A stretch of 64,000 bases of DNA from Macrostomum lignano (Eukaryota). Every line of letters starts with the position of its first letter. Position 1 is the stretch's first letter. Positions 1 through 58,305 of the stretch are shown here, piece by piece. The stretch covers positions 232,755 through 296,754 of the forward strand of contig NIVC01000129.1 in NCBI GenBank assembly GCA_002269645.1, read 5' to 3'. A program made the position numbers and the translations under genes. Below the pieces are notes generated by a model that saw only the letters and a list, made by a program, of their open reading frames with translations, did no database searches and was not told where the DNA came from.

Positions 1-21
1 CATTCTGAAATTAAATTTTAG

Positions 22-180
22 TTATTCGCGAGGCTGTCAACCTTGGATCTGACTATGCCACTCAAATTTTTCGCGGCTTTGTTGACAGCTTCTTGAATCC
101 TCCATCAGCCACCCTAGATCAGTGGCGCCTGGTGAAACTGGAAATGCTAGAGAATGGCTACTTTGAGGAGGAGTTTTCAG
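22..180 (+). CDS. DUF3715 (TASOR/TEX15-type pseudo-PARP) protein, first visible exon; gene continues upstream of the window
   Basis: ttttag acceptor at 20-21 and cag|gtaaga donor at 181. Reads IREAVNLGSDYATQIFRGFVDSFLNPPSATLDQWRLVKLEMLENGYFEEEFS and joins 2234 in phase 1. Resembles the start of TASOR DUF3715 (..SSYLEP..LVHNELLEKEFTEKRREL). Not in the ORF track. Confidence 0.8.
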
Positions 181-876
181 GTAAGATTTGACATCTCAGC
201 AGCTCCATTCCATCTTGATCCTTGGCCTACTCTTATCCTAAATTTATGAGCCTTTGATCAGCGAGGCTAGATTCGTCTCATTGGTAGTTCCGCTTTTTTA
301 AACTCGGGTTTACAAGTCTACATATTTTTAAGGAAATATTCGATATGCACTACTAAAAGTATCATGTAGCACAGAAAGTAAACTTGCAAAGTTGCTTATA
401 ACTATATCAATAAATGCCTTTGCGAGGGGACACTTGTGCAACATTATTTTTGTCCTTAAATATCCCAGATTCATATGATCGCATTGTTCTATCCTATTAG
501 CTGTGCGATTTGCTGGTATATTTTGGACACAGTTCAATGTATAATTTATGTAATGCAAAATTAATGGCGATTAATATACAAATGACTGTTAGCAAATGTT
601 TGAATTTGAAACTGTTTAACTTTTGGTTTGAAATAACTGCCTGCTCGTCAACTTGCGCAAAGCTGCTCAGATCTTCCCCTGTCCAGGAGGAATTTTCTTT
701 GCTTTCTTAGCTTGCGCAAGGGCTTGGGTGTGGCTAGATTAATAACTTTGTTATGGGGGCATTTCGTTACATTGTGAGCAAATTTTTGGCTTAGAATTTG
801 CTAATTGGTCATTTTTGCAACTGGAGTGTCCGAACATGCTGTTATTATGATTTTTACACATTGCTTCTACGGTTTT

Positions 877-1700
877 ATCTGCCTCTCCTCTCCCCCTCTG
901 TCCTTGAGAATCTGCCTCTCCACTCCCCCTCTGTCCTTGAGAATCTGCCTCTCCGCCTCCCTCAGTCCTTGAGAATCTGCCTCTCCTCTCCCCCTCAGTC
1001 CTTGAGAATCTGCCTCTCCACTCCCCCTCTGTCCTTGAGAATCTGCCTCTCCGCCTCCCTCAGTCCTTGAGAATCTGCCTCTCCTCTCCCCCTCAGTCCT
1101 TGAGAATCTGCCTCTCCTCTCCCCCTCTGTCCTTGAGAATCTGCCTCTCCGCTCCCTCAGTCCTTGAGAATCTGCCTCTCCTCTCCCCCTCTGTCCTTGA
1201 GAATCTGCCTCTCCTCTCCCCCTCAGTCCTTGAGAATCTGCCTCTCCGCTCCCTCAGTCCTTGAGAATCTGCCTCTCCGCCTCCCTCAGTCCTTGAGAAT
1301 CTGCCTCTCCTCTCCCCCTCAGTCCTTGAGAATCTGCCTCTCCGCCTCCCTCAGTCCTTGAGAATCTGCCTCTCCTCTCCCCCTCAGTCCTTGAGAATCT
1401 GCCTCTCCGCCTCCCTCAGTCCTTGAGAATCTGCCTCTCCTCTCCCCCTCAGTCCTTGAGAATCTGCCTCTCCTCTCCCCCTCAGTCCTTGAGAATCTGC
1501 CTCTCCACTTCCCCTCTGTCCTTGAGAATCTGCCTCTCCACTCCCCCTCTGTCCTTGAGAATCTGCCTCTCAGCTCCCCCTCTGTCCTTGAGAATCTGCC
1601 TCTCAGCTCCCCCTCTGTCCTTGAGAATCTGCCTCTCAGCTCCCCCTCTGTCCTTAAGAATCTGCCTTTCAGCCCCCCCCCTCTGTCCTTAAGAATCCGC
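877..1700. repeat. Intronic minisatellite, unit about 33 bp (TCCTTGAGAATCTGCCTCTCCTCTCCCCCTCAG)
   Basis: Direct tandem copies inside the 181-2233 intron. Confidence 0.95.
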
Positions 1701-2233
1701 TCTTCCTCTCCGCTCCTGAGGTCGTTGTAATCACTGAATCCTCAAATTAATTCTCAGCCTACTCGTCAACTTGTTAGAAGCACAATCAATTTGCTTTTAA
1801 CAAGGGCTTGGGTAAGGCAAGAGTATGTACCGGATGCTCAGGTCTCGTTTCATCTTAATGTCAAAGATGGATCATTTGGCGTTTGAAAGATAAAATGCAT
1901 CTTTCAAATTTGAGCCAAGGCCTCTTGCATCCGTACAACAAATAGTTTTTGTATCAATTTTTCTTGGAATTGTGCCCTCATTAAGTGCTTCATTCACTCA
2001 TTAAACGAAATATCAAGGGTCTATGCCGCCTTTACCCAGTCAAATAAGACATCAAAGGGTTTTGCCGCTATTTTGCGACTTTTTTTTCCAATAAAATAAA
2101 GACATCAAAGGGTTATGCCGCTATTTTGCGACGCCTTTTCCCAATAAAATAAAGACATCCAAGGGTTACGTCTCCTTTTTTTAAACTAGCCAAACATCCA
2201 TTTGTCTTGCCTCTTGCCACTATTTTTCACCAG

Positions 2234-2637
2234 AGAGGCGGGCCGAGTTCTCGCGCCAAGGCCTGGCTCAGGACGAGCTGTCCACTCACTATGGCTTCCT
2301 GGCCGCGGCTAGCGAAGAGCTGGTCGATCTAACGCTACGAGAAGGCCTCAAAGTTCGCTTCTGTCCAATTAACTCGCTTGGCTACTGCATTTCCGGTGTT
2401 CACCTGTGCGTACACGGCGACGTCTGTCTGCAGGAGGCGGCGCTGGAGACTGGAGACGATGGCGAGCAAATTGTACTGGTTGCGTTCAAGTTCATGTTTG
2501 GCAGGACCCGGCGAGTGACCCCCGTCACGCCTAAGGATATGGCTATTATAGCGCCTAGTCCTGGGTTCAACTGCCACATTCCCGATGTCAGGCCTGGCAG
2601 GACCGACTCTTTGTCTGACCAATACCTCAGATCATTG
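2234..2637 (+). CDS. DUF3715 protein, core-domain exon
   Basis: ttttcaccag acceptor and ttg|gtgagt donor. Reads ERRAEFSRQGLAQDELSTHYGFL..GLKV..GVHLCVHGDVCL..VAFKFMFGRTRRV..IAPSPGFNCHIP, colinear with recalled TASOR motifs (ELSESYAFL, GVYLSRYADLL, VIFKIMKGK, LDPTPKHECHVS). Confidence 0.85.
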
Positions 2638-2652
2638 GTGAGTTCTGCAGTG

Positions 2653-2998
2653 TCAGTCAGTAGGTGTCTCAGGCCATCATATCTGTGTGTCAGTCAGTAG
2701 GTGCCTCAGGCCATCATATCTGTGTGTCAGTCAGTAGGTGCCTCAGACCATCATATCTGTGTGTCAGTCAGTACAGTAGGTGCCTCAGACCATCATATCT
2801 GTGTGTCAGTCAGTAGGTGCCTCAGACCATCATATCTGTGTGTCAGTTAGTAGGTGCCTCAGGCCATCATATCTGTGTGTCAGTCAGTAGGTGCCTCAGG
2901 CCATCATATCTGTGTGTCAGTCAGTAGGTGTCTCAGGCCATCATATCTGTGTGTCAGTCAGTAGGTGCCTCAGGCCATCATGTCTGTGTGTCAGTCAG
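2653..2998. repeat. Intronic minisatellite, 37-bp unit (GTCAGTCAGTAGGTGCCTCAGGCCATCATATCTGTGT)
   Basis: About 9 tandem copies filling most of the 2638-3023 intron. Confidence 0.95.
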
Positions 2999-3023
2999 CC
3001 CTCATTCCCTTGTCTGTCCGCAG

Positions 3024-3917
3024 GCCTACCTGTACGAGTTCGAGAACTCTTTCTACCACCCGGTGCCCCGGCCCCGCCAGTGCAGCCCCCTGGCCGCTCT
3101 CTACCTGCGTCGCAGGCGCGGCAGCGGAGTTCCACCGAAACCGCCGCAGTTTCTGCCGACCGCCGGTCGCTTTCCCTCCGCGGCTGTCACGGCCTCGTTG
3201 GCCTCGTCTCTGTCCTCTCGGCAGCCGTCAATTCCATCCATGCCTCCGCCAGGCGTGATGATGTCGATGTCGGGTCTGATCTCAGCAGCCAGTAGTCAGG
3301 CTCAAACTGCTGCCGTTATGAGTCAGCAGCCAATGTTGCGGCTCGCCCCGGATGTGGCTAGTGCAGTTGGCAGCGTTCTGTCCGAGCTGCGGCATGCCTC
3401 ATCAACGACCGCCAGTGCGCAGCGGCAGCAGCAGCAGCAGCCTCCGCCTCCGCCTCCGCCGAAACTTGACGGTATTCGCGGCTTTTTAAAGAATGCGTCT
3501 GGCTCTGCTGCAGCAGCAAGCGGCAATGCGAGCGGCAGCAGCACTAGCAATAATAATAAAGTGCAACCGCTGATGCGGCAGCAGACTTCAGCGCCGATTG
3601 CCGCCTCTTCAACGCCTCTGTTAGCAGTTCGGCAAGCGTCGAAGCAGTTGCAGCAGCAGCAGCCGCCACCTCCGCTAGCCGAGCCGCCAAGACGAAACGC
3701 CTTCCTGACTGCTAGTGCAGCCGCCTCCTCCGCCGCTGCCACAACAGCAACTGTCGGTGCCACCAGCGCGGCTAGTTCAACTGGCGGCAATCGGTTTCAT
3801 CCCTACGCCCGGCTGTATACGGCGGCCGCATCGTCCGTGTCTAACAATGGTAGCAGCAATCAGCAAAGCGCGTCAACTGTTGGTCGAAAGTCTGGCTTTG
3901 GAGTCGGTCGAAGATAG
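3024..3917 (+). CDS. DUF3715 protein, terminal exon (domain end plus low-complexity tail)
   Basis: ccgcag acceptor, phase 0. AYLYEFENSFYHPVPRPRQCSPLAAL matches TASOR YYFYEY..RRRPRHVCPYAVV and is followed by an S/A/Q/P-rich tail. Stop at 3915-3917; AATAAA at 4022. Confidence 0.85.
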   Translation, partial: AYLYEFENSFYHPVPRPRQCSPLAALYLRRRRGSGVPPKPPQFLPTAGRFPSAAVTASLASSLSSRQPSIPSMPPPGVMMSMSGLISAASSQAQTAAVMSQQPMLRLAPDVASAVGSVLSELRHASSTTASAQRQQQQQPPPPPPPKLDGIRGFLKNASGSAAAASGNASGSSTSNNNKVQPLMRQQTSAPIAASSTPLLAVRQASKQLQQQQPPPPLAEPPRRNAFLTASAAASSAAATTATVGATSAASSTGGNRFHPYARLYTAAASSVSNNGSSNQQSASTVGRKSGFGVGRR

Positions 3918-4225
3918 TACATAAATTTTTGTAAAAGATTTATAATGACCGAATAGATAGCCAGAGAATAGCATTTAATTGTCGTTGGTTTCATTATGCA
4001 GAACAGTATAGTACAAAATTCAATAAATTATGTACTACAATATTCGTATTCGAGATCTTAAACTAATTGGTCTTGTGGTTATACTGGTGGAATTGTTTAA
4101 AACACGATAGTTTTGTATTCTTTTGATAAAAAATCATGACACCACGTAGTTAAAAATAATTTAAATTTAAAACTGTTATCTGATTAAGGCTTTCCACTTT
4201 TTTACCAAGTAACTTGTCAGTTTGG

Positions 4226-4642
4226 AGCAGGAGTGAGGCTTGTGTCTCAGTGGAGGTTGGGGCAGGAGTGAGGTTGGTGTCTCAGTGGGGGCTGGGGCAG
4301 GAGTGAGGTTGGTGTCTCAGTGCGGGTTGGGGCAGGAGTGAGGCTTGTGTCTCAGTGGGGGCTGGGGCAGGAGTGAGGTTGGTGTCTCAGTGGGGGCTGG
4401 GGCAGGAGTGTGGTTGGTGTCTCAGTGAAGGCTGGGGCAGGAGTGAGGTTGGTGTCTTAGTGGGGGTTGGGGCAGGAGTGAGGTTGGTGTCTCAGTGGAG
4501 GCTGGGGCAGGAGTGAGGTTGGTGTCTTAGTGGGGGTTGGGGCAGGAGTGAGGTTGGTGTCTCAGTGGGGGCTGGGGCAGGAGTGAGGTTGGTGTCTCAG
4601 TGGGGGCTGGGGCAGGAGTGAGGTTGGTGTCTCAGTGGGGGG
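4226..4642. repeat. G-rich 35-bp minisatellite (GGGGCAGGAGTGAGGTTGGTGTCTCAGTGGGGGCT)
   Basis: About 12 tandem copies. Confidence 0.95.
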
Positions 4643-14261: not shown

Positions 14262-15440
14262 AAACTGCATTTGGCGCCTCTCTCTAAGCTGCATTTGGCG
14301 CCTCTCCCTAAGCTGCATTTGGCGCCTCTCCCTAAGCTGCATTTGGCGCCTCTCCCTAAGCTGCATTTGGCGCCTCTCCCTAAGCTGCATTTGGCGCCTC
14401 TCCCTAAGCTGCATTTGGCGCCTCTCTCTAAACTGCATTTGGCGCCTCTCTCTAAACTGCATTAGGCGCCTATCCCTAAACTGCATTTGGCGCCTCTCCC
14501 TAAACAACATTTGGCGCCTCTCTCTAAACTGCATTTGGCGCCTCTCCCTAAACAACATTTGGCGCCTCTCCCTAAACTGCATTAGGCGCCTATCCCTAAA
14601 CTGCATTTGGCGCCTCTCCCTAAACAACATTTGGCGCCTCTCTCTAAACTGCATTTGGCGCCTCTCCCTAAACAACATTTGGCGCCTCTCCCTAAACTGC
14701 ATTTGGCGCCTCTCTCTAAACTGCATTTGGCGCCTCTCCCTAAACAACATTTGGCGCCTCTCTCTAAACTGCATTTGGCGCCTCTCCCTAAGCTGCACTT
14801 GGCGCCTCTCTCTAAACTGCATTTGGCGCCTCTCTCTAAACTGCATTAGGCGCCTATCCCTAAACTGCATTTGGCGCCTCTCCCTAAACAACATTTGGCG
14901 CCTCTCTCTAAACTGCATTAGCGCCTCTCTCTAAACTGCATTTGGCGCCTCTCTCTAAACTGCATTAGGCGCCTATCCCTAAACTGCATTTGGCGCCTCT
15001 CCCTAAACAACATTTGGCGCCTCTCTCTAAACTGCATTTGGCGCCTCTCCCTAAACAACATTTGGCGCCTCTCCCTAAACTGCATTTGGCGCCTCTCTCT
15101 AAACTGCATTTGGCGCCTCTCCCTAAACAACATTTGGCGCCTCTCTCTAAACTGCATTTGGCGCCTCTCCCTAAACAACATTTGGCGCCTCTCCCTAAAC
15201 TGCATTTGGCGCCTCTCTCTAAACTGCATTTGGCGCCTCTCCCTAAACAACATTTGGCGCCTCTCTCTAAACTGCATTTGGCGCCTCTCTCTAAACTGCA
15301 TTTGGCGCCTCTCTCTAAACTGCATTTGGCGCCTCTCTCTAAACTGCATTTAGCGCCTCTCTCTAAACTGCATTTGGCGCCTCTCTCTAAACTGCATTTG
15401 GCGCCTCTCTCTAAACTGCATTTGGCGCCTCCCTCTAAAC
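14262..15440. repeat. 24-bp minisatellite (AAACTGCATTTGGCGCCTCTCYCT)
   Basis: About 49 tandem copies. Confidence 0.97.
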
Positions 15441-20316: not shown

Positions 20317-21345
20317 ACGTGCTGTCCCAGTCGCCGCAGGCAGCAAGCGCAGACTCAGGTCTGTCCGGTCGCAACCGGCTGGCAGCGGCGGCGGCCAAGA
20401 CGCCGCACGCAACTTTGCGCCCGGTGAACTGCCTGCCGCTGCCTTCAGCAGCTCTCTCAGAGTGCGGCAAGCAGCAGCCACGGCAGCCGTCATATCAGCA
20501 GCCGCAGCAGCAGCAGCAGCAGCAAACCTGCAGCAGTTTTCTCCGACGGGCCGTCGCTCCCGACAGTCCGTCGATGCCAGCCGTTGGACGACCTTCGCCG
20601 CCGAGCATTCCTCGACGGGCTCCGTCGACTCGACTGTCGGGCAAAAGCGAACCCGAAGTGCAACCGCAGCCTCCGTCGCTGCCGCCTCCGCCACTGGAGT
20701 TCGAGGATGCCACCAGGGACGAGGAGGACATCGACTCAGACATCGAGACCGCGGTGCCGTCTGTCTCGGAGATCCTGAACCTCTTCAACAAGCAGAACGT
20801 GCTGTCCAAAGCGAAGAAGCCTTCAAGCTCCAAGCAGCCTGCGGAACAGCCAACCCAGCTGGTGCTGCAGCCGGCTCCCCAGCAGGGGGGCCAGCTGCAG
20901 CAGCAGCGCTTCATCCTTCAGCAGGTCGCTTCCGAGTCTTCCAGTCATCCATTAGTTCAGCAGCAGCAGCAGCAGCAGCAGCAGTTCACCCCGTCTCCAG
21001 CAGTGCCTCACCAGGCTCCGCAAAAGCTGGAGTATCGCCCGCTGCCTCCGCCACCTCCGACACCTCCGCCACCGCCCACGCCACCCCAGCAGAAGCAGCA
21101 GCAGCAGCAGCAGCAATATCTGGTACAACAGAAAAAGGAACTTGTGGCAGAAGAAGACGAGGATCAGACCTACGCGGTACCTTATCAGTTTGCACCTGAA
21201 GGTGGCGATTATTGGCAACAACAGCAGCAGCAGCAGAAGACGCAGTCATCCGCAGCATCTTCGGTTGTGTCCCAGCTGCAACTGCTGAAGCAAAGCTTGT
21301 TGTCAGGCGTTGCCAGGGCCACCTCTGCTGGGTCTGCTAAGAAAG
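20317..21345 (+). CDS. ESPN: Espin/forked-like protein, large P/Q-rich exon
   Basis: ctcccag acceptor and aaag|gttagt donor (phase 1). Polyproline and polyQ tracts, VPSVSEILNLF. Confidence 0.75.
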
Positions 21346-21354
21346 GTTAGTAGA

Positions 21355-23121: not shown

Positions 23122-26010
23122 GTGACACAAATACTTCATCACCTTCTGACACAAATACTTTATCACATGACCCAAACACTTCATCACCTTCTGACACAAA
23201 TACTTCATCACCTTCTGACAAATACTTCATCACCTTCTGACACAAATACTTTATCACATGACCCAAATACTTCATCACCTTCTGACACAAATACTTCATC
23301 ACCTTCTGACACAAATACTTTATCACATGACCCAAACACTTCATCACCATCTGACACAAATACTTCATCACCTTCTGACACAAATACTTCATCACCTTCT
23401 GACTCAAATACTTCATTACCTTCTGACACAAATACTTTATCACATGACCCAAATACTTCATCACCTTCTGACACAAATACTTCATCACCTTCTGACACAA
23501 ATACTTTATCACATGACCCAAACACTTCATCACCATCTGACACAAATACTTCATCACCTTCTGACACAAATACTTCATCACCTTCTGACACAAATACTTC
23601 ATCACCTTCTGACACAAATACTTTATCACATGACCCAAATACTTCATCACCTTCTGACACAAATACTTCATCACCTTCTGACACAAATACTTCATCACCT
23701 TCTGACACAAATACTTCATCACCTTCTGACACAAATACTTCATCACCTTCTGACACAAATACTTCATCACCTTCTGACACAAATAATTTATCACATGACC
23801 CAAATACTACCTCACCTTCTGACACAAATACTTCATCGCCTTCTGACACAAGTACTTCATCACTTTCTGACACAAATACTTTATCACATGACACAAATAC
23901 TACCTCACCTTCTGACCCAAATACTTCATCACCTTCTGACACAAATACTTCATCACCTTCTGACACAAATACTTCATCACCTTCTGACACAAATACTTCA
24001 TCACCTTCTGACACAAATACTTCATCACCTTCTGACACAAATACTTCATCACCTTCTGACACAAATACTTTATCACATGACCCAAATACTACCTCACCTT
24101 CTGACACAAATACTTCATCGCCTTCTGACACAAATACTTCATCACCTTCTGACACAAATACTTTATCACATGACCCAAATACTTCATCACCTTCTGACAC
24201 AAATACTTCATCACCTTCTGACACAAATACTTCATCACCTTCTGACACAAATACTTCATCACCTTCTGACACAAATACTTTATCACCTTCTGACACGAAT
24301 ACTACCTCACCTTCTGACACAAATGCTACCTCATTTTCTGACACAAATACTACCTCACCTTCTGACACAAATACTACCTCACCTTCTGACACAAATACTA
24401 CCTCACCTTCTGACACAAATACTTAATCACTTTCTGACACAAATACTTCATCACCTTCTGACACAAATACTTTATCACTTTCTGACACAAATACTTAATC
24501 AACTACTGACACAAATACTTCATCACCTTCTGACACAAATACTTCATCAACTACTGACACAAATACTTAATCACCTGACACAAATACTTCATCAACTACT
24601 GACACAAATACTTCATCACCTGACACAAATACTTCATCACCTGACGCAAATGCTTCATCACCTTCTGACACAAATACTTCATCACCTTCTGACACAAATA
24701 CTTTATCACCTTCTGACACGAATACTACCTCACCTTCTGACACAAATGCTACATCACCTTCTGACACAAAAACTTAATCAACTACTGACACGAATACTTC
24801 ATCACCTGACACAAATTCTTCATCACCTGACACAAATACTTCATCACCTGACGCAAATACTTCATCAACTACTGACACAAATACTTCATCACCTGACACA
24901 AATACTTCATCACCTTCTGACGCAAATACTTCATCACCTGACACAAATACTTTATCACCTGACGCAAATACTTCATCAACTACTGACACAAGTACTTCAT
25001 CAACTACTGACACAAATACTTTCTCACCTTCTGACACAAATACTTAATCAACTACTGACACAAATACTTCATCACCTGACACAAATTCTTGATCACCTGA
25101 CACAAATACTTCATCACCTGACGCAAATACTTCATCAACTACTGACACAAATACTTCATCACCTGACACAAATACTTCATCACCTTCTGACGCAAATACT
25201 TCATCACCTGACACAAATACTTTATCACCTGACGCAAATACTTTATCAACTACTGATACAAGTACTTCATCAACTACTGACACAAGTTCAACTACTAACA
25301 CAAATACTTTCTCACCTTCTGACACAAATACTTTATCACCTTCTGACACAAATACTTCATCGACCACTGACACAAGTTCAAATACTGACACAAATACTTT
25401 CTCACCTTCTGACACAAATACTTTATCACCTTCTGACACAAATACTTTATCACTTTCTGACACAAATACTTTATCACCTTCTGACACAAATACTTTATCA
25501 ACTACTGACACAAGTTCAAATACTGACACAAATACTTTCTCACCTTCTGACGCAAATACTTTATCACCTTCTGACACAAATACTTCATCAACTACTGACA
25601 CAAGTTCAACTACTGACACAAATATTTTATCACCTTCTGACACAAATACTTCATCAACTACTGACACAAGTTCAACTACTGACACAAATACTTTATCACC
25701 TTCTGACACAAATACTTTATCACCTTCTGACACAAATACTTCATCGACCACTGACACAAGTTCAAATACTGACACAAATACTTTCTCACCTTCTGACACA
25801 AATACTTTCTCACCTTCTGACACAAATACTTTATCACCTTCTGACACAAATACTTTATCACTTTCTGACACAAATACTTTATCACCTTCTGACACAAATA
25901 CTTCATCAACTACTGACACAAGTTCAACTACTGACAAATACTTTATCACCTTCTGACACAAATACTTTATCACCTTCTGACACAAATACTTCATCAACTA
26001 CTGACACAGA
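23122..26010. repeat. Intronic 24-bp minisatellite (CTGACACAAATACTTCATCACCTT), about 2.9 kb
   Basis: Tandem copies with 21-bp and other variants. Confidence 0.97.
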
Positions 26011-26137
26011 CACTTCATCACCTTATAATGCATCTAATACTAATATCTAATCTAATACCTTTCCCCACCTGAAGAAAAACATGTTTCGTTAACGTTCCGA
26101 CACCTCAACACAACAACTAAAATCTGAAAACTTTCAG

Positions 26138-27245: not shown

Positions 27246-27914
27246 CCGTGTGACTGTTAATCAAAATCTGTGAAGCAAAGCTCGTTAGTTACTGTGAATA
27301 AAAAGAGCTAATTATTCGAAACCCAGACCGTGAATCGCAGTACTTGAGCCATCATGAGCAAATTATCGTGTCGCGAAGCCGCTTGCCTTCAATTTTTAAT
27401 ATTTTGATTGCCCATTGATCAAATTTTGACTCACTGATGATAAAATTTCATCCAACATGCATCGATGCTCTTATTCGATTCTGCAAAAAGTGAATCAGTT
27501 TCCTCATTCTTCTCACAAATTTAAATTCAATCTTTGCATGCTCGTTAAAACAAAAAATGCTAACTAAATTAGTTAATAAATTATTTGTTTGATCTTGTCA
27601 CGTAAATTTTCCCTTTAATTATTCAATGTCATTGGTAATTTGCGGAATTCTGATTCAACAGTTTTTTATCTAAACAGAAATTTCAGAAGTTTTGCTTTTT
27701 TAAAACTTTTCTATCGTGAAATTTTCTGGCCAGTGCTTTTTCTGAATGGCTGAGTCCAAATTTTTCTAAAAATGATAACAAGCCATCTTTAGCAAAGCTC
27801 GCAAACTGTTTGATTTAAAATATTCAAATACACTGTACATCCATCGCTGCAATGACGCTCTGAAATACTTTAATTGTTCAAGAATTTCTAAAAATTCTTT
27901 TTATCCTTTCGAAT

Positions 27915-30900
27915 CTTCATCACCTGGGAAATCCCAGTCTCCATCACCTGGGAAATCCCAGTCTCCATCACCTGGGAAAGCCCAGTCTCTATCACCTGGG
28001 AAATCCCAGCCTCCATCACCTGGGAAATCCCAGTCTCCATCACCTGGGAAATCCCAGCCTCCATCACCTGGGAAATCTCAGTCTCCATCACCTGGAAAAT
28101 CTCAGTATCCATCACCTGGGAAATCCCAGTCTCCATCACCTGGGAAATCTCAGTCTCCATCACCTGGGAAATCTCAGTTCTCCATCACCTGGGAAATCTC
28201 AGTCTCCATCACCTGGAAAATCCCAGTTCTCCATCACCTGGGAAACCCAGTCTCCATCACCTGGGAAATCCCAGTCTCCATCACCTTGGAGGAAATCCCA
28301 GTTCTCCATCACCTGGGAAACCCAGTCTCCATCACCTGGGAAATCTCAGTCTCCATCACCTGGGAGGAAATCCCAGTCTCCATCACCTGGGAAATCTCAG
28401 TCTCCATCACCTGGGAAACCCAGTCTCCATCACCTGGGAAATCCCAGTATCCATCACCTGGGAAATCCCAGTCTCCATCACCTGGGAAATCTCAGTCTCC
28501 ATCACCTGGGAAATCTCAGTTCTCCATCACCTGGGAAATCTCAGTCTCCATCACCTGGGAAATCCCAGTCTCCATCACCTGGGAAATCCCAGTCTCTATC
28601 ACCTGGGAAATCCCAGCCTCCATCACCTGGGAAATCCCAGTCTCCATCACCTGGGAAATCCCAGCCTCCATCACCTGGGAAATCTCAGTCTCCATCACCT
28701 GGGAAATCTCAGTCTCCATCACCTGGGAAATCTCAGTCTCCATCACCTGGGAAATCTCAGTCTCCATCACCTGGGAAATCTCAGTCTCCATCACCTGGGA
28801 AATCCCAGTCTCCATCACCTGGGAAATCTCAGTCTCCATCACCTGGGAAATCTCAGTTCTCCATCACCTGGGAAATCTCAGTCTCCATCACCTGGAAAAT
28901 CCCAGTTCTCCATCACCTTGGAAACCCAGTCTCCATCACCTGGGAAATCCCAGTCTCCATCACCTGGGAGGAAATCCCAGTTCTCCATCACCTGAGAAAC
29001 CCAGTCTCCATCACCTGGGAAATCTCAGTCTCCATCACCTGGGAAATCTCAGTTCTCCATCACCTGGGAAATCTCAGTCTCCATCACCTGGGAAATCCCA
29101 GCCTCCATCACCTGGGAAATCTCAGTCTCTATCACCTGGGAAATCCCAGCCTCCATCACCTGGGAAATCCCAGTCTCCATCACCTGGGAAATCCCAGCCT
29201 CCATCACCTGGGAAATCTCAGTCTCCATCACCTGGGAAATCTCAGTATCCATCACCTGGGAAATCTCAGTCTCCATCACCTGGGAAATCTCAGTCTCCAT
29301 CACCTGGGAAATCTCAGTTCTCCATCACCTGGGAAATCTCAGTCTCCATCACCTGGGAAATCCCAGCCTCCATCACCTGGGAAATCTCAGTCTCTATCAC
29401 CTGGGAAATCCCAGCCTCCATCACCTGGGAAATCCCAGTCTCCATCACCTGGGAAATCCCAGCCTCCATCACCTGGGAAATCTCAGTCTCCATCACCTGG
29501 GAAATCTCAGTATCCATCACCTGGGAAATCTCAGTCTCCATCACCTGGGAAATCTCAGTCTCCATCACCTGGGAAATCCCAGTCTCCATCACCTGGGAAA
29601 TCTCAGTCTCCATCACCTGGAAAATCCCAGTTCTCCATCACCTGGGAAACCCAGTCTCCATCACCTGGGAAATCCCAGTCTCCATCACCTGGGAGGAAAT
29701 CCCAGTTCTCCATCACCTGAGAAACCCAGTCTCCATCACCTGGGAAATCTCAGTTTCCATCACCTGGGAAATCTCAGTCTCCATCACCTGGGAAATCTCA
29801 GTCTCCATCACCTGGGAGGAAATCCGAGTTCTCCATCACCTGGGAAATCCCTATCTCCATCACCTTGGAGGAAATCCCAGTCTCCATCACCTGGGAAATC
29901 CCAGTCTCCATCACCTGGGAAATCCCAGTCTCCATCACCTGGAAAATCCCAGTCTCCATCACCTGGGAGGAAATCCCAGTTCTCCATCACCTAGGAAACC
30001 CAGTCTCCATCACCTGGGAAATCTCAGTCTCCATCACCTGGGAGGAAATCCCAGTCTCCATCACCTGGGAAGGAAATCAGAGTTCTCTAACACCTGGGAA
30101 ATCCCAGTCTCCATCACCTGGGAGGAAATCTCAGTTCTCCATCACCTGAGAAACCCAGTCTCCATCACCTGGGAAATCTCAGTTTCCATCACCTGGGAAA
30201 TCTCAGTTTCCATCACCTGGGAAATCTCAGTCTCCATCACCTGGGAAATCTCAGTCTCCATCACCTGGGAGGAAATCCGAGTTCTCCATCACCTGGGAAA
30301 TCCCAGTCTCCATCACCTTGGAGGAAATCCCAGCCTGCATCACCTGGGAAATCCCAGTCTCCATCACCTGGGAAATCCCAGCCTCCATCACCTGGGAAAT
30401 CTCAGTCTCCATCACCTGGGAAATCCCAGTCTCCATCACCTGGGAAATCTCATTCTCCATCACCTGGGAAATCTCAGTCTCCATCACCTGGGAAATCCCA
30501 GTTCTCCATCACCTGGGAAATCCCAGTCTCCATCACCTGGGAAATCTCATTCTCCATCACCTGGGAAATCTCAGTCTCCATCACCTGGGAAATCTCAGTC
30601 TCCATCACCTGGGAGGAAATCCCAGTTCTCCATCACCTGGGAAACCCAGTCTCCATCACCTGGGAAATCTCAGTCTCCATCACCTGGGAAGGAAACCCAG
30701 TCTCCATTACCTGGGAAATCCCAGTTCTCCATCACCTGGGAGGAAATCCCAGTTCTCCATCACCTGGGAAATCCCAGTCTCCATCACCTGGGAAATCTCA
30801 TTCTCCATCACCTGGGAAATCTCAGTCTCCATCACCTGGGAAATCCCAGTTCTCCATCACCTGGGAGGAAATCCCAGTTCTCCATCACCTGGGAAACCCA

Positions 30901-30995
30901 GTTCTCCATCACCTGGGAGAAAATCCCAGTTCTCCATCACCTGGGAAACCCAGTTCTCCATCACCTGGGGAGGAAATCCCAGTTCTCCATCACCT
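27915..30995. repeat. 24-bp minisatellite (CTCCATCACCTGGGAAATCYCAGT), about 3.1 kb
   Basis: Tandem copies, including higher-order duplicated blocks (about 29049-29303 and 29314-29616). Confidence 0.97.
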
Positions 30996-32133: not shown

Positions 32134-32509
32134 GGTGATTATCTAAGTCCCTTTGACATATTTATTTGAAAATTCAATTCGAATCAATCACACGTATTGT
32201 GCATGTGGAAGTTGAGCTTGGAAGTTGTTTCTATTATTTTTCAGCAAAAAATACCCAATTATCTCGACTTCTGCAGTTTTCCGAATAGGCCGGAATTTCG
32301 CCGTCCCTAACGGGTACTCGTAAACTCAATCTTACCATTATAAACTTACAGACATTGCGCGCGAGATAATACTTCTCACGAGTTGAAAATAATAGATAAA
32401 ACTTCAAATTCAAATTGCAATTGCAATAAAACAAAACTGCCCCCTTCCAGACTACTGAGGGACGAGTCGGATAAGGGCGGCTCTGCTTCTGTAGCTGGAG
32501 GATCGAGTG

Positions 32510-33212
32510 GGCTCGAGGTGCATCACCTCGAGCTGTTGCATAATAGAACCTGTTACCAGGGATGACATTGGATGACAGAGAGAAGTACGATTCATCGTCC
32601 ATGACAATGTCCAGTCCGCCGTCATCTCCTGCCAGCACAGCACGGTAGAGCCTGTCAATCCTCACACGCTGACGCTCTTTCTGCTCAAACGACACAAATG
32701 GCACTTTTTCTTTCTTGTATGCACTTAGTCCCTGCTTCTTGAGAATCTCGTTGACGTACGGCTGGCTGATGTCATATTTGCGTGCAATTTCGCGCTGGGA
32801 CAGACCCGTCCTGGCATCATTTGACATCTTCTCCATCAAAGTGGCAGTGACCTTGGTAGCTGGTCGTCCTGACCCCTCCTTCCGTAGCACAGAATCTTCT
32901 CCAGTTGCTGAGTAGCGATCCAGAATTCCATAAATGGTTGATCTTGGGACACCAAGCTCAGCAAAATATTTTGCGATTGCATTGTTGCTCAGCCCAGGGT
33001 GCTCAATTTTATATTGTACAACCAGTTTACGCCGCTGCTCTTCATTTAGAGACTGCATCTCAGACGTGACGGGGCAAACAAGTGAAAAAAACAACTTAAG
33101 TTGTGAGGAAGACCCCCAGTATTGCTCAAAAGCATCAGCTCAATAAATTTGCCTCGTTAAATTTTGTCTATGGCAAAAACTAACCATGTCCAGATTTTTA
33201 CCAATCACCCAG
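32510..33212 (-). mobile_element. 3'-truncated Tc1/mariner transposon
   Basis: ORF from ATG 33058 has two HTH regions (NNAIAKYFAELGVPRSTIYGIL, GSGRP, LSQREIARKYDISQPYVNEIL) and the first catalytic Asp (VMDDESYF), then loses homology at about 32510. Terminus TA|CTGGGTGATT at 33212; no partner TIR found. Confidence 0.8.
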
Positions 33213-33230
33213 TATTTTTATATACTAGGG

Positions 33231-34882
33231 CAGGGAATCCTATTTGTTTCACCAGGAACCGACACTGGTCCCGCACCACCCCACCTCCCCTACAAGTTGA
33301 GGCCCAAGCCTTCGAGCCTTCGAGACTCGGGAGTTTTTGTGAGGAAACCCTTCCTTGTAGGGAGGGTTCCCACAAATGGGGACGAAAAATAACAGAAGAG
33401 TAATTTTTAGTTGAGAGTTAGGGAGAATAAATAACAGAATGGGCAGGAGATCCTCGCTGCGCTGCTGTGTATGTACGAGTTCGTGGAACAAAGAGCCTTT
33501 CCTGGGGGACGGAAGTGCATAGGAAAATTAATGTGCGTTCTTCCCTCACACTGTACTCTACTGCACATTCACTGTTCTTTGCCCCTATATACGTTGCGAG
33601 TTTGTCTCGAAGAGCACTGACTCGCAATCTTCTCAATTCCACTCTATCGCATTTTGAAACTACCTGATCGTTCCCACTATGGGCTACAAGTGCTGCGTTC
33701 CTCTGTGCGTCACCAACTATGCTCGCTATGAGAAGAATCCAACCGTGACTATCCACAAGTTTCCATCATCTACGCAGTTGGTGCTCCTGAATAAGTGGAT
33801 CACGGCCATTCCACGCGTGTGGACCGATTCCGAGTTGGAGCAGCTGAGAACAAACCCTAACCACAGCTACAGGGTCTGCTCGCTTCACTTCCCTGAGAAG
33901 TACTTCGTGATCAACTCTCGGGACTCCAATCCCCACCGCAAACGGACCGAAGCAGATGGTCAGCCTGCAGGCAAGCTAAAGCTTCGGCGTCTAGCCGCTG
34001 ATGCCCTGCCTTGCATCTTCCCAAATGCACCCTCCTATCTGAACAAGACCATCACTGAGGAGCGCCCCACTCAGCTGGCATCGGCCGAGACCCGCCGGGA
34101 GAACGACACGAGGCGGTGCGAAGAAGAAGCGACAGACTTCTTGCAGAAGGATGACATTGTGGACTTCCAGGCCCTCGTGTCGTTCGAACTGCCTGACCAT
34201 TTGCAATGCTTTCACAAGCAGACCTCTGTCTCAACTTTATGCTTTTTTGTTACTCGGATGTGTCTTGCTGAGACCCCTAAAATTGCAGTGTCATTAACGG
34301 TGAGTAACTCTTTGCATTTTACTGTCACCATTGATGGAGCAGATCCGGTGAGTTCCGCGACATGCTGAAACAGAAGTGTCCTTGCGGAAGACCTGGGGTT
34401 ATTTTCTCCTCCAGGATCCTCACCCCAGCAGTCAGAATCTTTTTGAATAATTTCGTGAATGAGACCAACGACAACTTGAAGAACGAGAAAGCTTTAAAGA
34501 GAAAGAAGGTAAAGTTATCGGGTGAATGAGTCTGTCTGTAGTCCTACTGGAGTCATAATGAGTCTTCAAGAATTGCTTTTCAGTGGGAGTTCTTGCCTGT
34601 CATTTGCCAGTGCAATGGAGGATTTTTATATTGATTTATTCTCCAAAACTGAGCAATATAGAATAGAAAAAATATATTAAATTAAAAAGCAATGCAGCAA
34701 ATATTTTCTTCGACACTGTCTTAATTATTTTTGTTTACTTCTTTTCGATGATTCCTTATGCGAAAGGCATGCTAACCAGGCAAGAAATTGGGGGAATGGG
34801 GAGGGGACTTGGGCCTCAACTTGTAGGCCCCACTTTTCAGTGTCGCTTCCTGGGGAGCGCAGCGAGCCAATAGGATTCCCTG
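33231..34882 (+). mobile_element. Internally deleted P-superfamily DNA transposon
   Basis: 14-bp TIR CAGGGAATCCTATT / AATAGGATTCCCTG with further subterminal inverted matches (CCTACAAGTTGAGGCCCAAG); 7-bp TSD ACTAGGG at 33224-33230 and 34883-34889; THAP ORF inside. Confidence 0.85.
33679..34368 (+). CDS. THAP-domain truncated transposase (229 aa)
   Basis: C2CH THAP motif: CCVPLC..HKFP..W..IPR..RVCSLHF..ALPCIFP. The transposase C-terminus survives out of frame at about 34346-34529 (EFRDMLKQKCPCG..IFLNNFVNETND..KRKKVKL*). Confidence 0.85.
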   Translation: MGYKCCVPLCVTNYARYEKNPTVTIHKFPSSTQLVLLNKWITAIPRVWTDSELEQLRTNPNHSYRVCSLHFPEKYFVINSRDSNPHRKRTEADGQPAGKLKLRRLAADALPCIFPNAPSYLNKTITEERPTQLASAETRRENDTRRCEEEATDFLQKDDIVDFQALVSFELPDHLQCFHKQTSVSTLCFFVTRMCLAETPKIAVSLTVSNSLHFTVTIDGADPVSSATC

Positions 34883-42539: not shown

Positions 42540-43700
42540 AAATGCAGCTATAATGCTGTGCTAGGGAGAAAGACTGAGACGTCAAGGCTCTCAGAGAATA
42601 ACTAAGATTACGGGGGGGGGGGTTTCTGAGATGTTAAAGCAAAAGTCAGAAGCTACTTCAGAGTTCATATACTTTACTCAATTTTTTTATTACATTCTTT
42701 GTTGGCTCGCCACGGGGGGGGGGGCGCTGATAGAAGAAGAGTCATGTAAAAAATAAAAGTAGCACTATGTATACATAGAAGAAAAGTCATGTCGAAGTTA
42801 AAAGATTAATTTGGGAATTGCTACAATGTCAAAGCTTGGTGGAAATTGTTATAGTGCTGTGATTCTTAAAAAAGGAATCACTAAAATGTCAAGGCTTAGG
42901 GGAGAAGAATTGCTGAGATTTCAAGGCTTTAGGTTGGGTTAAAGTAACAGGGGATTTTTTAGATTTCAAGGTTTATGGGGGCCATCGCTGACATGTCAAG
43001 GCTTACGGGGGGAATAGCTGAGATGTCAAGGCTCACTGGGGTAAAAATGAGATTTCAAGGCTAAAGCCAGAAGCTACATGTAGTTTATTAAAAACTTTTT
43101 GTTACATTATTTGATGCCTCCTCAGGGGAGAGATCGCTGATAAAAAAACCGTAATGTAAAAAATAAAAAAAGCTTCATGTCGAAGTTAAGAGATTGATTT
43201 GGGAATTCCTACGATGTCGAGGCTTGCAGGGAATCGCTATAATGCTGTAGTAGTGCTATAATGACTCTTAGAGAGAATTACTGAAATTTCAATGCTTTAG
43301 GGTTAGGTTAGGGTTAGGGTTAGGGTTAGGCTAGGGCTAGGGTTAGGGTTAGGTTAGGGTTAGGGCTAGGGTTAGGTTTAGGTTAGGGTTAGGTTAGGGT
43401 TAGGGTTAGGGTTAGGGTTAGGCTAGGGTTAGGGTTAGGGTTAGGGTTAGGGTTAGGCTAGAGTTAGGGTTAGAAGGTTGACAGATATTTTTAGATTTCC
43501 AAGGCTTATTGGGGGCATTGCTGAGATGTCAAGGGGGGAAGTTGATATGTTAAAGCTTGTGGGGGGGTTGGAATTACTGACATTTCAAGGCTGACAAGTT
43601 TTGACAGGAGATTTTTTAAGATTTCAAGGATACCTGTAGCTTATTAAAAAAACGTGTATTGCATTTCTTTGGCTCCCCAACGGGGGGGGGCGTAGATTGC
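42540..43700. repeat. Diverged higher-order repeat (about 3 copies) built on the GCTGAGATGTCAAGGCTTAGGGGGAATT motif
   Basis: Recurring blocks at about 42680, 43095 and 43655. The same short motif forms the array at 54070-54895. Confidence 0.7.
43297..43473 (+). repeat. Interstitial telomeric repeat (TTAGGG)n, about 30 units with TTAGG and CTAGGG variants
   Basis: Seen directly. Confidence 0.97.
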
Positions 43701-43947: not shown

Positions 43948-49029
<5,082 letters not shown>

Positions 49030-54895: not shown

Positions 54896-55435
54896 GTAAT
54901 TTATTATTAATAGATATTATCATTTTAGATAATTAGTAAGGTTATTAATTACTCTTGGGCCAACGTAAAAACCACTTGGCATTATTTTTAATTGGCGTAG
55001 GCATAAACTATCTAATGGGTATTGCTGTAAATTTTAATTTTTATGTCCCACAAAGCGGGTCTAATTTCTAGTTTTAGCTAATTTCAAACAGAAATGCTAT
55101 AAAACCTTTACTTGGCAATTTGAAATCACAATAGTCATAAGCGGGCTTTTGTGCATGAATATTTCTTATAACATGAATATTTTTGAATGGCTGTGTTAGT
55201 TTTATTTAATCTAAATATGTTTTGTCTTTATCATTAATTAGTGGTTGAAATTGTATCAATCCAGCTTGGAAGTTTTAGGAGAAAGTTTTTTTGTATACCT
55301 TAAAAGTTGATGGTTTCTAAGAAACAGTTTCTGGCCCTTCCTAAGTAGGTATTATCTATTGTATTCATAGTATTAACACAGCTATACAGTACATATTGCA
55401 CGTTCGATTGTCATCCATGCCTACACAAATTGCAG

Positions 55436-56212
55436 TCTCGTCAGTCATCCAGGCCGGGCAGCGTCCACTCGGTGCACACGCCCGAGCCGCCGCCGCCGCC
55501 GATGCCGCCCCACTCAATGCCCGGCGGCTGCTCCAGCTCCGGCTACCGCTACGCCCCTGGCCCGCCGCCGCCATCCTCAATGCCAATGATGCCGCACACT
55601 CACCATCACCATCCCAATCATCTTCCTCCGCCGCCTCCCCATCATCACGGCCCGCTTCCTCATCAGGGCCTGCCGAGGCCGCCACCGGCTCCGCTGCACC
55701 ATCACCATCCCGGAACTGGCGGCGGCCCCGCCGGCTTTCACGCCGGTCCGGCGCCGGCCATGCCGCCGATGCCGCCCCATCATCACCGTCCCATGCATCC
55801 CCACCACCCGATGCCGCCGCCACCGCCGCCCCCGCCGCCGACAGCCGACTTGCGAGTCCACGAGATCAACAAGCGCCTGTCGCAGCGGCCGCGGGACACG
55901 CCGATTCAGTGGTGGCACAGCTTCGCTAACGAATTCTTCGAAGACGACGCCGTTATGATTTTGTCAATTGGCCCGCTGCCAGACGAGCCCGGCCCGAAGT
56001 CCTACGTCATTGGCCGGGTTCTAATACCCAGATTCTTTCAATACCTGCTGGAAGGCTGCGATGAAGCCTATTTCTGGCTGAGAGCGCCTCACGAGTCGTT
56101 GCTGGGCCCGCCGCCGAGGCCGGGGCCGCCAGTACCACCACTTCTGGTGCTGTCCTGCCAGGCTGGGGAGCTGGTCACCAGCTATTATCGGGTGCAGCCG
56201 GTCATGTGCAAG
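55436..56212 (+). CDS. LDB1: LIM-domain-binding protein (LDB1/2, Chip orthologue), exon with dimerisation domain; start uncertain
   Basis: DLRVHEINKRL..WWHSFANEFFEDDA..GPKSYVIGRVLIPRFF..EG matches the LDB dimerisation domain. Candidate acceptor ttgcag at 55435; aag|gtatga donor. Confidence 0.9.
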
Positions 56213-56226
56213 GTATGAGAGACTTT

Positions 56227-57195: not shown

Positions 57196-58305
57196 GTACT
57201 GACAGACGTGGCTTTGAACATCGAATTCATCATGGATGACCAGATGCGAGTCCGCCTATGGAGTATGGAGGTGCGCGGATTCCGTGAACTAGTGCCCCGC
57301 CTGATGCTGCAGTCGCCGCCGCCGCCTCATCATCAGCATCCGCATTTGCAGCATCACCCGCCGCCCGGCCCTTCCAAGGCTCTGTTGGACATGGCGTCCA
57401 AGAACATGACTAGGGCCGGCCTGCCCAACGATCTGGTGCATTTCGCCCGCCTGTCGGCCATCCTGCAGCCCATGCAGGAGCTCATGGCCATGCAGAGACA
57501 GTTCGGTCACGCGCCGCGCCAGTGTCTGCACAACGTGCTCTACCGCAAGTGGCAACGCGAGACCGGGAGTAGCGGCGGCGGCGGCAGCAACGGACCGCCG
57601 ACTGCCAACGGCGGCCCGTCGTCCGCAGCGTCCGGCGATTCGTCAAAGTCGAACGGCAAAGGCGGCGGTAAAGGCGGCGGCAAGGCGGGCGCCGGCAAAG
57701 GCAAGAAACGGAAAGCCGCTTCGGCCGCTTCCGGTGACGGCGCCGCCGGTCAGGGCGCCAAGAAGGCGGCCAGGGCGAGTCCTTCATCGGCTGCTAATGC
57801 GGCAGCGGCGGCGGCGGCAGCGGCAGCTTCCACCGGCATACTGGGACCGGCCGACGTGATGGTCGTGACGGAGCCAACCATGATGGGCTGCGGAGGGGGC
57901 GCAGAAGCAGACGAGAGGCTGATCACTCGGCTGGAGAATTCGCAGTTCGACCCCAGCCGATCCACGTCCTCGGCCTCGTCCGGATTCTACAACAATATGA
58001 ATCACCTCGGCCATAATAATAATAATAATATTCATGATAATAATGGCGGCAACGGCAAGATGGGCATGCTGCCGCCGCCTCCCATGATGATGATGCACCA
58101 GCAGCACCCGCATCATCATCAGCTTCAGCAGCAGCCGCCTCCGCCGCGCCCTCCGCCGCCTCCTCCGCCTCCGCCGGTGTCCAGCAGCGTCCAGCAGCAA
58201 CCGCCGCCGCCCCCGCACATGGCACCATCGCCGGCTGGCAGCGTGGGGTCTTGCCGGAGCAAGCCGAACACCCCCATGAGCCTCAGCCATCCATCGCCGT
58301 GTTAG
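57196..58305 (+). CDS. LDB1: LDB/Chip, terminal exon (LCCD, NLS, LIM-interaction domain)
   Basis: ttccag acceptor, phase 0. EFIMDDQMRV, SKNMTRAGL, ILQPMQELM..PRQCL..LYRKWQR, KKRKA and DVMVVTEPTMMG..DERLITRLENSQFD. Confidence 0.92.
   Translation, partial: VLTDVALNIEFIMDDQMRVRLWSMEVRGFRELVPRLMLQSPPPPHHQHPHLQHHPPPGPSKALLDMASKNMTRAGLPNDLVHFARLSAILQPMQELMAMQRQFGHAPRQCLHNVLYRKWQRETGSSGGGGSNGPPTANGGPSSAASGDSSKSNGKGGGKGGGKAGAGKGKKRKAASAASGDGAAGQGAKKAARASPSSAANAAAAAAAAAASTGILGPADVMVVTEPTMMGCGGGAEADERLITRLENSQFDPSRSTSSASSGFYNNMNHLGHNNNNNIHDNNGGNGKMGMLPPPPMMMMHQQHPHHHQLQQQPPPPRPPPPPPPPPVSSSVQQQPPPPPHMAPSPAGSVGSCRSKPNTPMSLSHPSPC

Follow-up and report, generated by a model that had tools for sequence, protein, structure and literature searches.

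TEX15 is essential for DNA methylation directed by PIWI-interacting RNAs (piRNAs), and in TASOR, the scaffold of the HUSH complex, a pseudo-PARP domain (DUF3715) is essential. Here, we analyze a DUF3715 gene at the start of a stretch of 64,000 nucleotides (nt), hereafter the window, from the flatworm Macrostomum lignano (assembly GCA_002269645.1, contig NIVC01000129.1, positions 232,755 to 296,754 of the forward strand). The gene is intact, transcribed and selectively constrained, and it is one of two 97%-identical homeologues; as judged from its sequence, it most probably represents the flatworms within a set of short DUF3715 proteins of spiralian animals and stands furthest from TASOR.

In TASOR, silencing requires the domain, whereas HUSH assembly does not; the domain acts after assembly and chromatin targeting and binds single-stranded RNA weakly; its NAD pocket is occluded and its 'active-site' residues are mutable without effect, and within a β8-β9 loop of 14 residues (5 in PARPs) the substitution Y305A or the deletion of residues 307-312 abolishes silencing (PMC7532188). 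The human and zebrafish TEX15 domains can substitute for that of TASOR, DUF3715 arose early, the TEX15 architecture is vertebrate-specific, and TASOR-like proteins occur in invertebrates (Schöpp 2023, PMC10578480). DUF3715-only homologues are present in 21 of 28 cnidarians (bioRxiv 10.64898/2026.09.07.749791).

A previous reading of the window, made without database searches (the sequence-only reading), rightly judged the DNA to come from an invertebrate with a very repeat-rich genome. Its presentation of the gene as a discovery did not stand, given that GenBank already annotates the gene, UniProt recognises the domain, and earlier work describes invertebrate proteins with DUF3715 alone; for the same reasons, the genome observation in itself adds little.

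Gene structure and the homeologous copy

When the three exons present in the window are joined (Table 1), the sequence is open in a single frame of 484 amino acids (aa) plus stop, with canonical AG/GT borders at all exon edges inside the window and the first 2 nt, at position 22, forming the end of a split codon. The sequence-only reading had proposed these same three phase-compatible exons, two of them missing or partial in its mechanical list of open reading frames (ORFs), and this description was accurate: exon 22-180 has no entry, exon 2234-2637 is covered only in part by ORF 2494-2700, and exon 3024-3917 lies inside a 329-aa ORF (2928-3917). The junctions on which its model depended, 180/2234 and 2637/3024, have RNA support, because they are identical to those of a transcript-derived model: the 484-aa protein is contained without any difference, both junctions included, in GenBank PAA64525.1 (BOX15_Mlig032307g1, 505 aa), and gene models of this assembly were built from RNA-seq transcript assemblies (StringTie/TACO, TBONE, TransDecoder; PMC5730564). 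The second copy, PAA83647.1 (BOX15_Mlig000758g2, 488 aa), comes from the same assembly as PAA64525.1 and bears the UniProt name 'TASOR pseudo-PARP domain-containing protein' (A0A267GDX0). Its locus (L001, on contig NIVC01000412.1) was our reference for comparing the two copies. An apparent third paralogue, A0A1I8FKM2 (241 aa, 87% identical), turned out to be the same gene, modelled with a frameshift in an older assembly, and was rejected.

The start of the protein lies to the left of the window and is known from the homeologue, in which the first coding exon (L001 10001-10025, ATG GAC AAG TAC TCC TCG CGA AGA G) is followed by an intron of about 92 nt and contributes nine residues, MDKYSSRRV. 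The complete protein comprises about 493 aa (MDKYSSRRV plus 484 aa) and is truly short, because the homeologue has an in-frame TAA 18 nt upstream of the same ATG. Therefore, the upstream exons that the sequence-only reading wished to see checked amount to this single 9-aa coding exon, and a full TASOR or TEX15 architecture was not found. PAA64525.1 is flagged as 'partial' at its 5' end in GenBank although the same ATG is present, because a leader difference of 2 nt (TA) relative to L001 9983-10003 leaves 12 upstream codons open.

Comparison of the two copies shows a marked difference between the domain and the rest of the protein. Across the 225 codons of the domain, 5 synonymous and no non-synonymous changes separate the window copy from its homeologue (synonymous divergence, dS, 0.031), whereas about 15 non-synonymous changes would be expected at the same rate under neutrality; because of this zero against five, the domain is judged to be under strong purifying selection in both copies. 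In the 259 codons of the tail, there are 7 synonymous and 11 non-synonymous changes as well as one in-frame indel of 15 nt (omega about 0.57), so that the tail is constrained only loosely, yet its frame and stop are kept. The introns are 86-94% identical (intron 2 about 86-88%) and differ in minisatellite copy number; intron 3, for example, is 386 nt long in the window copy and 669 nt in the homeologue, from extra repeat copies.

These data bear on the question of whether the short protein could be an artefact, stemming from an incomplete model, or from the decay, of a long TASOR- or TEX15-like gene whose other exons lie elsewhere or were recently lost. The 'partial' flag is what such an origin would lead one to expect, and long DUF3715 proteins (1,500-4,500 aa) are numerous in the databases, while in Pomacea one and the same gene has both a 493-aa and a 1,228-aa model. 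However, the flag is due only to the 12 open codons in the 5' untranslated region, the stop, the AATAAA signal and the frame of the tail are kept in both copies, with the sole indel in frame, and the domain shows the excess of synonymous changes described above. Further, tblastn with long and short DUF3715 proteins returned nothing but DUF3715 exons in the 60 kb downstream, and similar short architectures occur in at least five other spiralian species. We therefore consider an artefact very unlikely.

Pseudo-PARP domain and low-complexity tail

The N-terminal domain of about 220 aa is a DUF3715 ('RDTS') pseudo-PARP domain with a long loop framed by YxYE ... RPR ... P. The sequence-only reading had named this family, and Pfam agrees, with DUF3715 (PF12509) hit at E 4.1e-21 and 76 bits (cut-off 28.5) and the full profile (1-150 of 150) aligned to aa 57-209. 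The only solved structure related to it by sequence, the TASOR pseudo-PARP domain (PDB 6TL1), was found at E 2.5e-14, with the TASOR motif GVYL opposite GVHL. A comparison of predicted structures, as that reading had also proposed, agrees: an AlphaFold2 model of residues 1-220, made from a 12-sequence alignment, has a mean predicted local distance difference test score (pLDDT) of 91 and a predicted template modelling score (pTM) of 0.88, and its top Foldseek match in PDB is again 6TL1 (E 1.6e-20, template modelling score (TM) 0.84/0.89, root-mean-square deviation 2.4 Å), followed by the catalytic domains of tankyrase and PARP10 at TM about 0.65. Likewise, a profile of the 12-sequence alignment retrieved 6TL1 at 2e-59 and PARP15 and PARP14 only marginally (E about 0.02).

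In the marginal PARP15/14 profile alignment (E about 0.02), which resolves two residues of the PARP H-Y-E set, the PARP catalytic His (FHGT) is opposite the Leu of YGFL and the NAD-stacking Tyr (GTYF) is opposite the His of GVHL. Because PARP His is thus Leu and PARP Tyr is His, the Macrostomum domain is predicted to be a pseudo-enzyme in which NAD+ binding and ADP-ribosylation have been lost. The sequence-only reading had pointed to GVHL at the PARP NAD-site tyrosine, and it was right about the position; the substitution itself is not special and carries little meaning, because the TASOR pocket is occluded, Lingula (GVHL) and Pomacea (GVHV) share the His, and the catalytic His is also gone. 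Conversely, the PARP fold, the His in GVHL, and an invariant Glu in YLYEF might be taken as signs of an active, divergent mono-ADP-ribosyltransferase. We regard this as extremely unlikely, given the replacements at both the catalytic His and the NAD-stacking Tyr and given that the closest structure, TASOR, is a proven pseudo-enzyme with an occluded pocket; in addition, the invariant Glu would lie where the long loop begins, behind the strand with the PARP catalytic Glu, as judged from the secondary structure of the model.

The β8-β9 loop of the Macrostomum domain (YEF-ENSFYHPVP-RPRQ) is comparable in length to that of TASOR, and none of the residues of its frame (Y189, E192, P204, R205, and P209) varies among the 12 proteins of the alignment. 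By contrast to this frame, the position equivalent to TASOR Y305 varies as M/T/I/L/F/Y among invertebrate proteins. A first phmmer alignment had put Y305 on an Asn of the Macrostomum protein; this was rejected in favor of the register of the multiple alignment (YEY/YEF), which puts it on Phe.

Downstream of the domain, the sequence-only reading had described about 265 aa of S/A/Q/P-rich sequence ending in a stop, which is what we find: 266 aa, of which 71% are S/A/Q/P/G/T/N, and a TAG. The tail is net basic, with 22 K+R versus 4 D+E. In an AlphaFold model of the full-length protein, pLDDT is below 50 for aa 221-484, where the only helices are two weak ones (240-251 and 296-312), and the tail is accordingly predicted to be disordered, although the alignment behind this model was shallow for the tail and the low pLDDT is therefore supportive rather than decisive.

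That reading had also noted the lack of the domains that follow DUF3715 in TASOR, and this was borne out by several kinds of search. Pfam detects no second domain in the protein, and PF15326, the TEX15 domain, has no match at E<=1, while it is detected in a true short TEX15 fragment. Pfam may have no model for TASOR SPOC and DomI, which are instead covered by tblastn and C-terminal clustering. When nine long and five short DUF3715 proteins (long TASOR, sponge FAM208A, TEX15, mollusc, brachiopod, and amphioxus sequences, and five short spiralian ones) were compared by tblastn with the whole window, they matched the DUF3715 exons only, and the 64 kb encode no SPOC, DomI, PIN, or TEX15 domain. 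Similarly, when the C-terminal parts of 148 DUF3715 proteins were compared all against all, the tail had no relative except that of its own homeologue.

Relatives and a possible role in silencing

Word-indexed searches with the full protein, the domain, or a profile found almost nothing beyond Macrostomum and TASOR fragments from fish and frog, and we therefore rely on an exhaustive HMMER search over 1.84 billion representatives. It yielded 227 homologues at E<=1e-3, the closest of which outside Macrostomum are merely 30-35% identical; the best single match of this kind is the N-terminus of mouse TEX15 (E 1e-25, 34% identity). Among the homologues is a set of short proteins from Owenia fusiformis (CAH1772610.1, 661 aa), Helobdella robusta (XP_009021406.1, 532 aa), Tubulanus polymorphus (XP_074655125.1, 578 aa), Lineus longissimus (XP_064643369.1, 539 aa), and Lingula anatina (XP_013395306.1, 622 aa), the last of which also has a long protein of 1,965 aa, together with the 493-aa isoform of Pomacea. 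In the short annelid, nemertean, and brachiopod proteins (six in all), as in the Pomacea isoform, Pfam reports DUF3715 and nothing else.

C-terminal homology separates three clusters, namely TASOR (43 proteins, including sponge FAM208A), TEX15 (33), and very long mollusc proteins (17). Scored against profiles of the groups, the Macrostomum domain reaches 163 bits with the short spiralian proteins (430-660 aa, from annelids, nemerteans, and a brachiopod), 134 with the mollusc group, 131 with TEX15, and 108 with TASOR, and nine unaffiliated control sequences showed no general preference for the short-spiralian profile. A neighbor-joining (NJ) tree puts Macrostomum beside Lingula and the clade of short annelid, nemertean, and brachiopod proteins, with poor support. 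In the bootstraps, the sister of Macrostomum is a 2,508-aa protein (34%), Lingula (21%), or the short clade (18%), and 6% of them place the Macrostomum domain within the TEX15 clade. Because these 47-taxon bootstraps resolve poorly, the placement rests on the profile scores.

By analogy with the two characterized lineages, we consider it fairly probable that the gene encodes a real short pseudo-PARP protein of the spiralian group that acts in silencing. Its chief rival is a pseudo-PARP whose role has nothing to do with transposon silencing, for example as an RNA-binding cofactor of antiviral defence or RNA decay, as with ZAP/PARP13, or as a hub for transcription factors, as with plant RCD1. 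What makes this rival worth considering is that the DUF3715 fold has no established function, that single-stranded RNA is bound only weakly by the TASOR domain, and that the basic tail resembles an RNA-binding intrinsically disordered region; further, the Macrostomum protein lacks the Tyr of TASOR Y305 and every domain for HUSH assembly, and there are marginal sequence matches to ZAP and SRO1. However, the fold match to TASOR is far above that to other PARPs, the TASOR-specific long β8-β9 loop is kept together with its RPR, and both DUF3715 lineages tested so far, TASOR and TEX15, silence transposons and are interchangeable. On this evidence, a non-silencing role appears rather unlikely, although it is the alternative that we take most seriously.

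Several observations nevertheless weigh against a silencing protein of the spiralian group. First, TASOR Tyr305, which is essential in human cells, corresponds to Phe in Macrostomum and to M/T/I/L/F in the short spiralian proteins. Second, only 54% of 200 NJ bootstraps (47 taxa) join Macrostomum to the short spiralian proteins to the exclusion of the TASOR, TEX15, and mollusc groups. Third, the molecular activity of DUF3715 is not established even for TASOR and TEX15, and the M. lignano full texts and supplements that we searched contain no expression, RNA interference (RNAi), or localisation data for Mlig032307, Mlig000758, or DUF3715. Fourth, the tails of the short proteins have a feature that was not detected in Macrostomum. 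The short annelid, nemertean, and brachiopod proteins (n = 6) carry one or two copies of a motif, NPxLxxIVxxINAKP, that none of the TASOR, TEX15, and mollusc proteins in the best 150 hits contains; it matches nothing in PDB or Pfam and may be an undescribed partner-binding helix. A hidden Markov model (HMM) of the motif gave no hit in the Macrostomum tail, and this counts against a simple one-to-one orthology with the short spiralian proteins. The best window for the motif by position-specific scoring matrix (PSSM) has p about 0.05 and lies at an unrelated site. MAFFT and AlphaFold put the two weak tail helices at motif-corresponding positions, which is a lead only. Three copies of the motif picked out by eye in the tail, KLDGIRGFLKNAS, APDVASAVGSVLSEL, and RFPSAAVTASLASSLSSR, were rejected as evidence, since the HMM gave no hit and the PSSM maximum is elsewhere.

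If the Macrostomum protein does act in silencing, it could be a non-enzymatic adaptor or effector in nuclear RNA-directed transposon repression, as inferred by analogy with TASOR and TEX15. The folded domain would then provide a conserved silencing surface, and the basic disordered tail would make nucleic-acid or partner contacts, replacing the SPOC/DomI/PIN scaffold of TASOR. The upstream guide could be the piRNA pathway of M. lignano, in which Macpiwi1 and piRNAs silence transposons in the germline and in neoblasts (PMC4604429). More generally, short DUF3715 proteins with basic tails might constitute an old minimal RDTS silencing effector of spiralians, working downstream of PIWI/piRNA or of another nascent-RNA sensor and without a HUSH-type scaffold, a proposal that we regard as speculative and unlikely as a whole. 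The sequence-only reading had suggested a minimal HUSH/TEX15-like silencing factor; the short pseudo-PARP part of that suggestion holds, whereas 'HUSH-like' in the strict sense is unlikely, with the assembly parts absent and the TASOR score the lowest, and silencing is purely inferential.

The value of the gene is as a possible minimal model for the activity of the domain. M. lignano is amenable to RNAi and transgenesis, and its piRNA pathway is active in somatic stem cells. A domain with a disordered tail in such a tractable flatworm could be a simpler system in which to learn what DUF3715 does alone, and if the minimal-effector proposal were true, the Macrostomum protein would be a tractable entry point to the molecular activity of the pseudo-PARP domain.

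Surrounding sequence and comparison with known systems

The positions of the gene features and of other elements in the window are collected in Table 1.

Table 1. Parts of the DUF3715 gene and other features, with positions counted from the first nucleotide of the window
Feature	Position	Strand	Remarks
Coding exon 1, ATGGACAAGTACTCCTCGCGAAGAG	outside the window, about 92 nt left	+	25 nt; 9 codons including split Val; known from L001
End of intron 1	1-21	+	last 21 nt; acceptor AG 20-21; same sequence precedes acceptor in L001
Coding exon 2	22-180	+	N-terminal helices and first strand of pseudo-PARP fold; 98.7% identical to L001 10119-10277
Intron 2	181-2233	+	2053 nt; donor GTAAGA at 181, acceptor AG 2232-2233; holds 33/98-bp minisatellite (877-1711) and 53-bp repeat (2027-2168)
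Coding exon 3	2234-2637	+	core of DUF3715; contains HYGFL, and GVHL at 2395-2406
Intron 3	2638-3023	+	386 nt; donor GTGAGT at 2638, acceptor AG 3022-3023; nearly all 37-bp minisatellite (2650-2998)
Coding exon 4, whole	3024-3917	+	
Coding exon 4, start	3024-3116	+	last two fold strands and extended TASOR-type β8-β9 loop YLYEF...RPRQ (3027-3080)
Low-complexity basic tail	3117-3914	+	266 aa; from composition and predicted disorder
Stop codon TAG	3915-3917	+	same place in homeologue
AATAAA polyadenylation signal	4022-4027	+	105 nt 3' of stop
Further minisatellite examples	4223-4641, 14262-15440, 23123-26024, 27914-30995		
Q/P/S-rich open frame	20319-21350	+	343 aa; putative coding only
Helix-turn-helix ORF	32234-33094	-	only transposase N-terminal-type helix-turn-helix domains
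THAP-domain ORF	33679-34368	+	E 3e-12
Telomere-like interstitial array	43297-43473		about 30 TTAGGG-type repeats
Non-LTR retrotransposon	43948-48879	-	813-aa ORF with reverse transcriptase (E 1e-30) and RNase H (E 7e-13)
Retrotransposon ORF pieces	46287-46958, 47192-47764, 47764-48879	-	upstream of the 813-aa ORF; frame breaks between
LIM-domain-binding (LDB/Chip) gene, two long exons	55430-56218, 57208-58305	+	LIM_bind and LID domains

Minisatellites are not confined to the introns of the DUF3715 gene, as more than 40 arrays, with periods mostly of 15-35 bp and lengths of up to 3 kb, occupy introns and intergenic DNA of the window. The retrotransposon, which lacks long terminal repeats (non-LTR), has three more ORF pieces besides its main one, and the telomere-like array lies about 470 bp past the 3' end of the retrotransposon ORF. 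The THAP-domain ORF adjoins the helix-turn-helix ORF on the opposite strand; no catalytic DDE part was seen at this pair, and the two may be what is left of a DNA transposon, or genes that were domesticated. The two LDB/Chip exons are flanked by very proline-/histidine-rich low-complexity coding sequence, and the Q/P/S-rich frame, which has no Pfam hit, overlaps other long frames in GC-rich low-complexity DNA.

Compared with described systems, the Macrostomum gene belongs to a group of short invertebrate relatives that has received little study; it is unremarkable within that group and not a new kind of system. With TASOR (FAM208A), it shares the fold, the degenerate NAD site, and a β8-β9 loop of similar length with RPR, and at the position of TASOR Leu130, where L130P is lethal in the mouse, it has another hydrophobic residue, Phe. 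It differs from TASOR in that Tyr305 is Phe and the Tyr of GVYL is His, and in that, of the four group profiles, its score is lowest with that of TASOR. It also lacks SPOC, DomI, the Periphilin-binding region, and DomII/PIN, and it therefore cannot assemble HUSH in the way that TASOR does; nor does it fit the definition of TASOR-like proteins as DUF3715 followed by SPOC and DomI (PMC10578480). TEX15 resembles it in combining DUF3715 with long disordered sequence, but TEX15 proteins have 2,000-3,200 aa and one or two copies of PF15326, of which the Macrostomum protein has none.

The cnidarian 'DUF3715-only' homologues, described as 'truncated Tex15' (bioRxiv 10.64898/2026.09.07.749791), belong to another phylum; in them, too, DUF3715 is the sole recognisable domain, a likeness that we draw from their description. 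The short spiralian DUF3715 proteins are only about 27-30% identical to the Macrostomum protein, and their tail motif is not detectable in it, but they are built in the same way, with DUF3715 at the N-terminus and no other Pfam domain, 200-440 aa of low-complexity tail after it, and the loop motif YL[YF]E...RPR[QH]..P in common.

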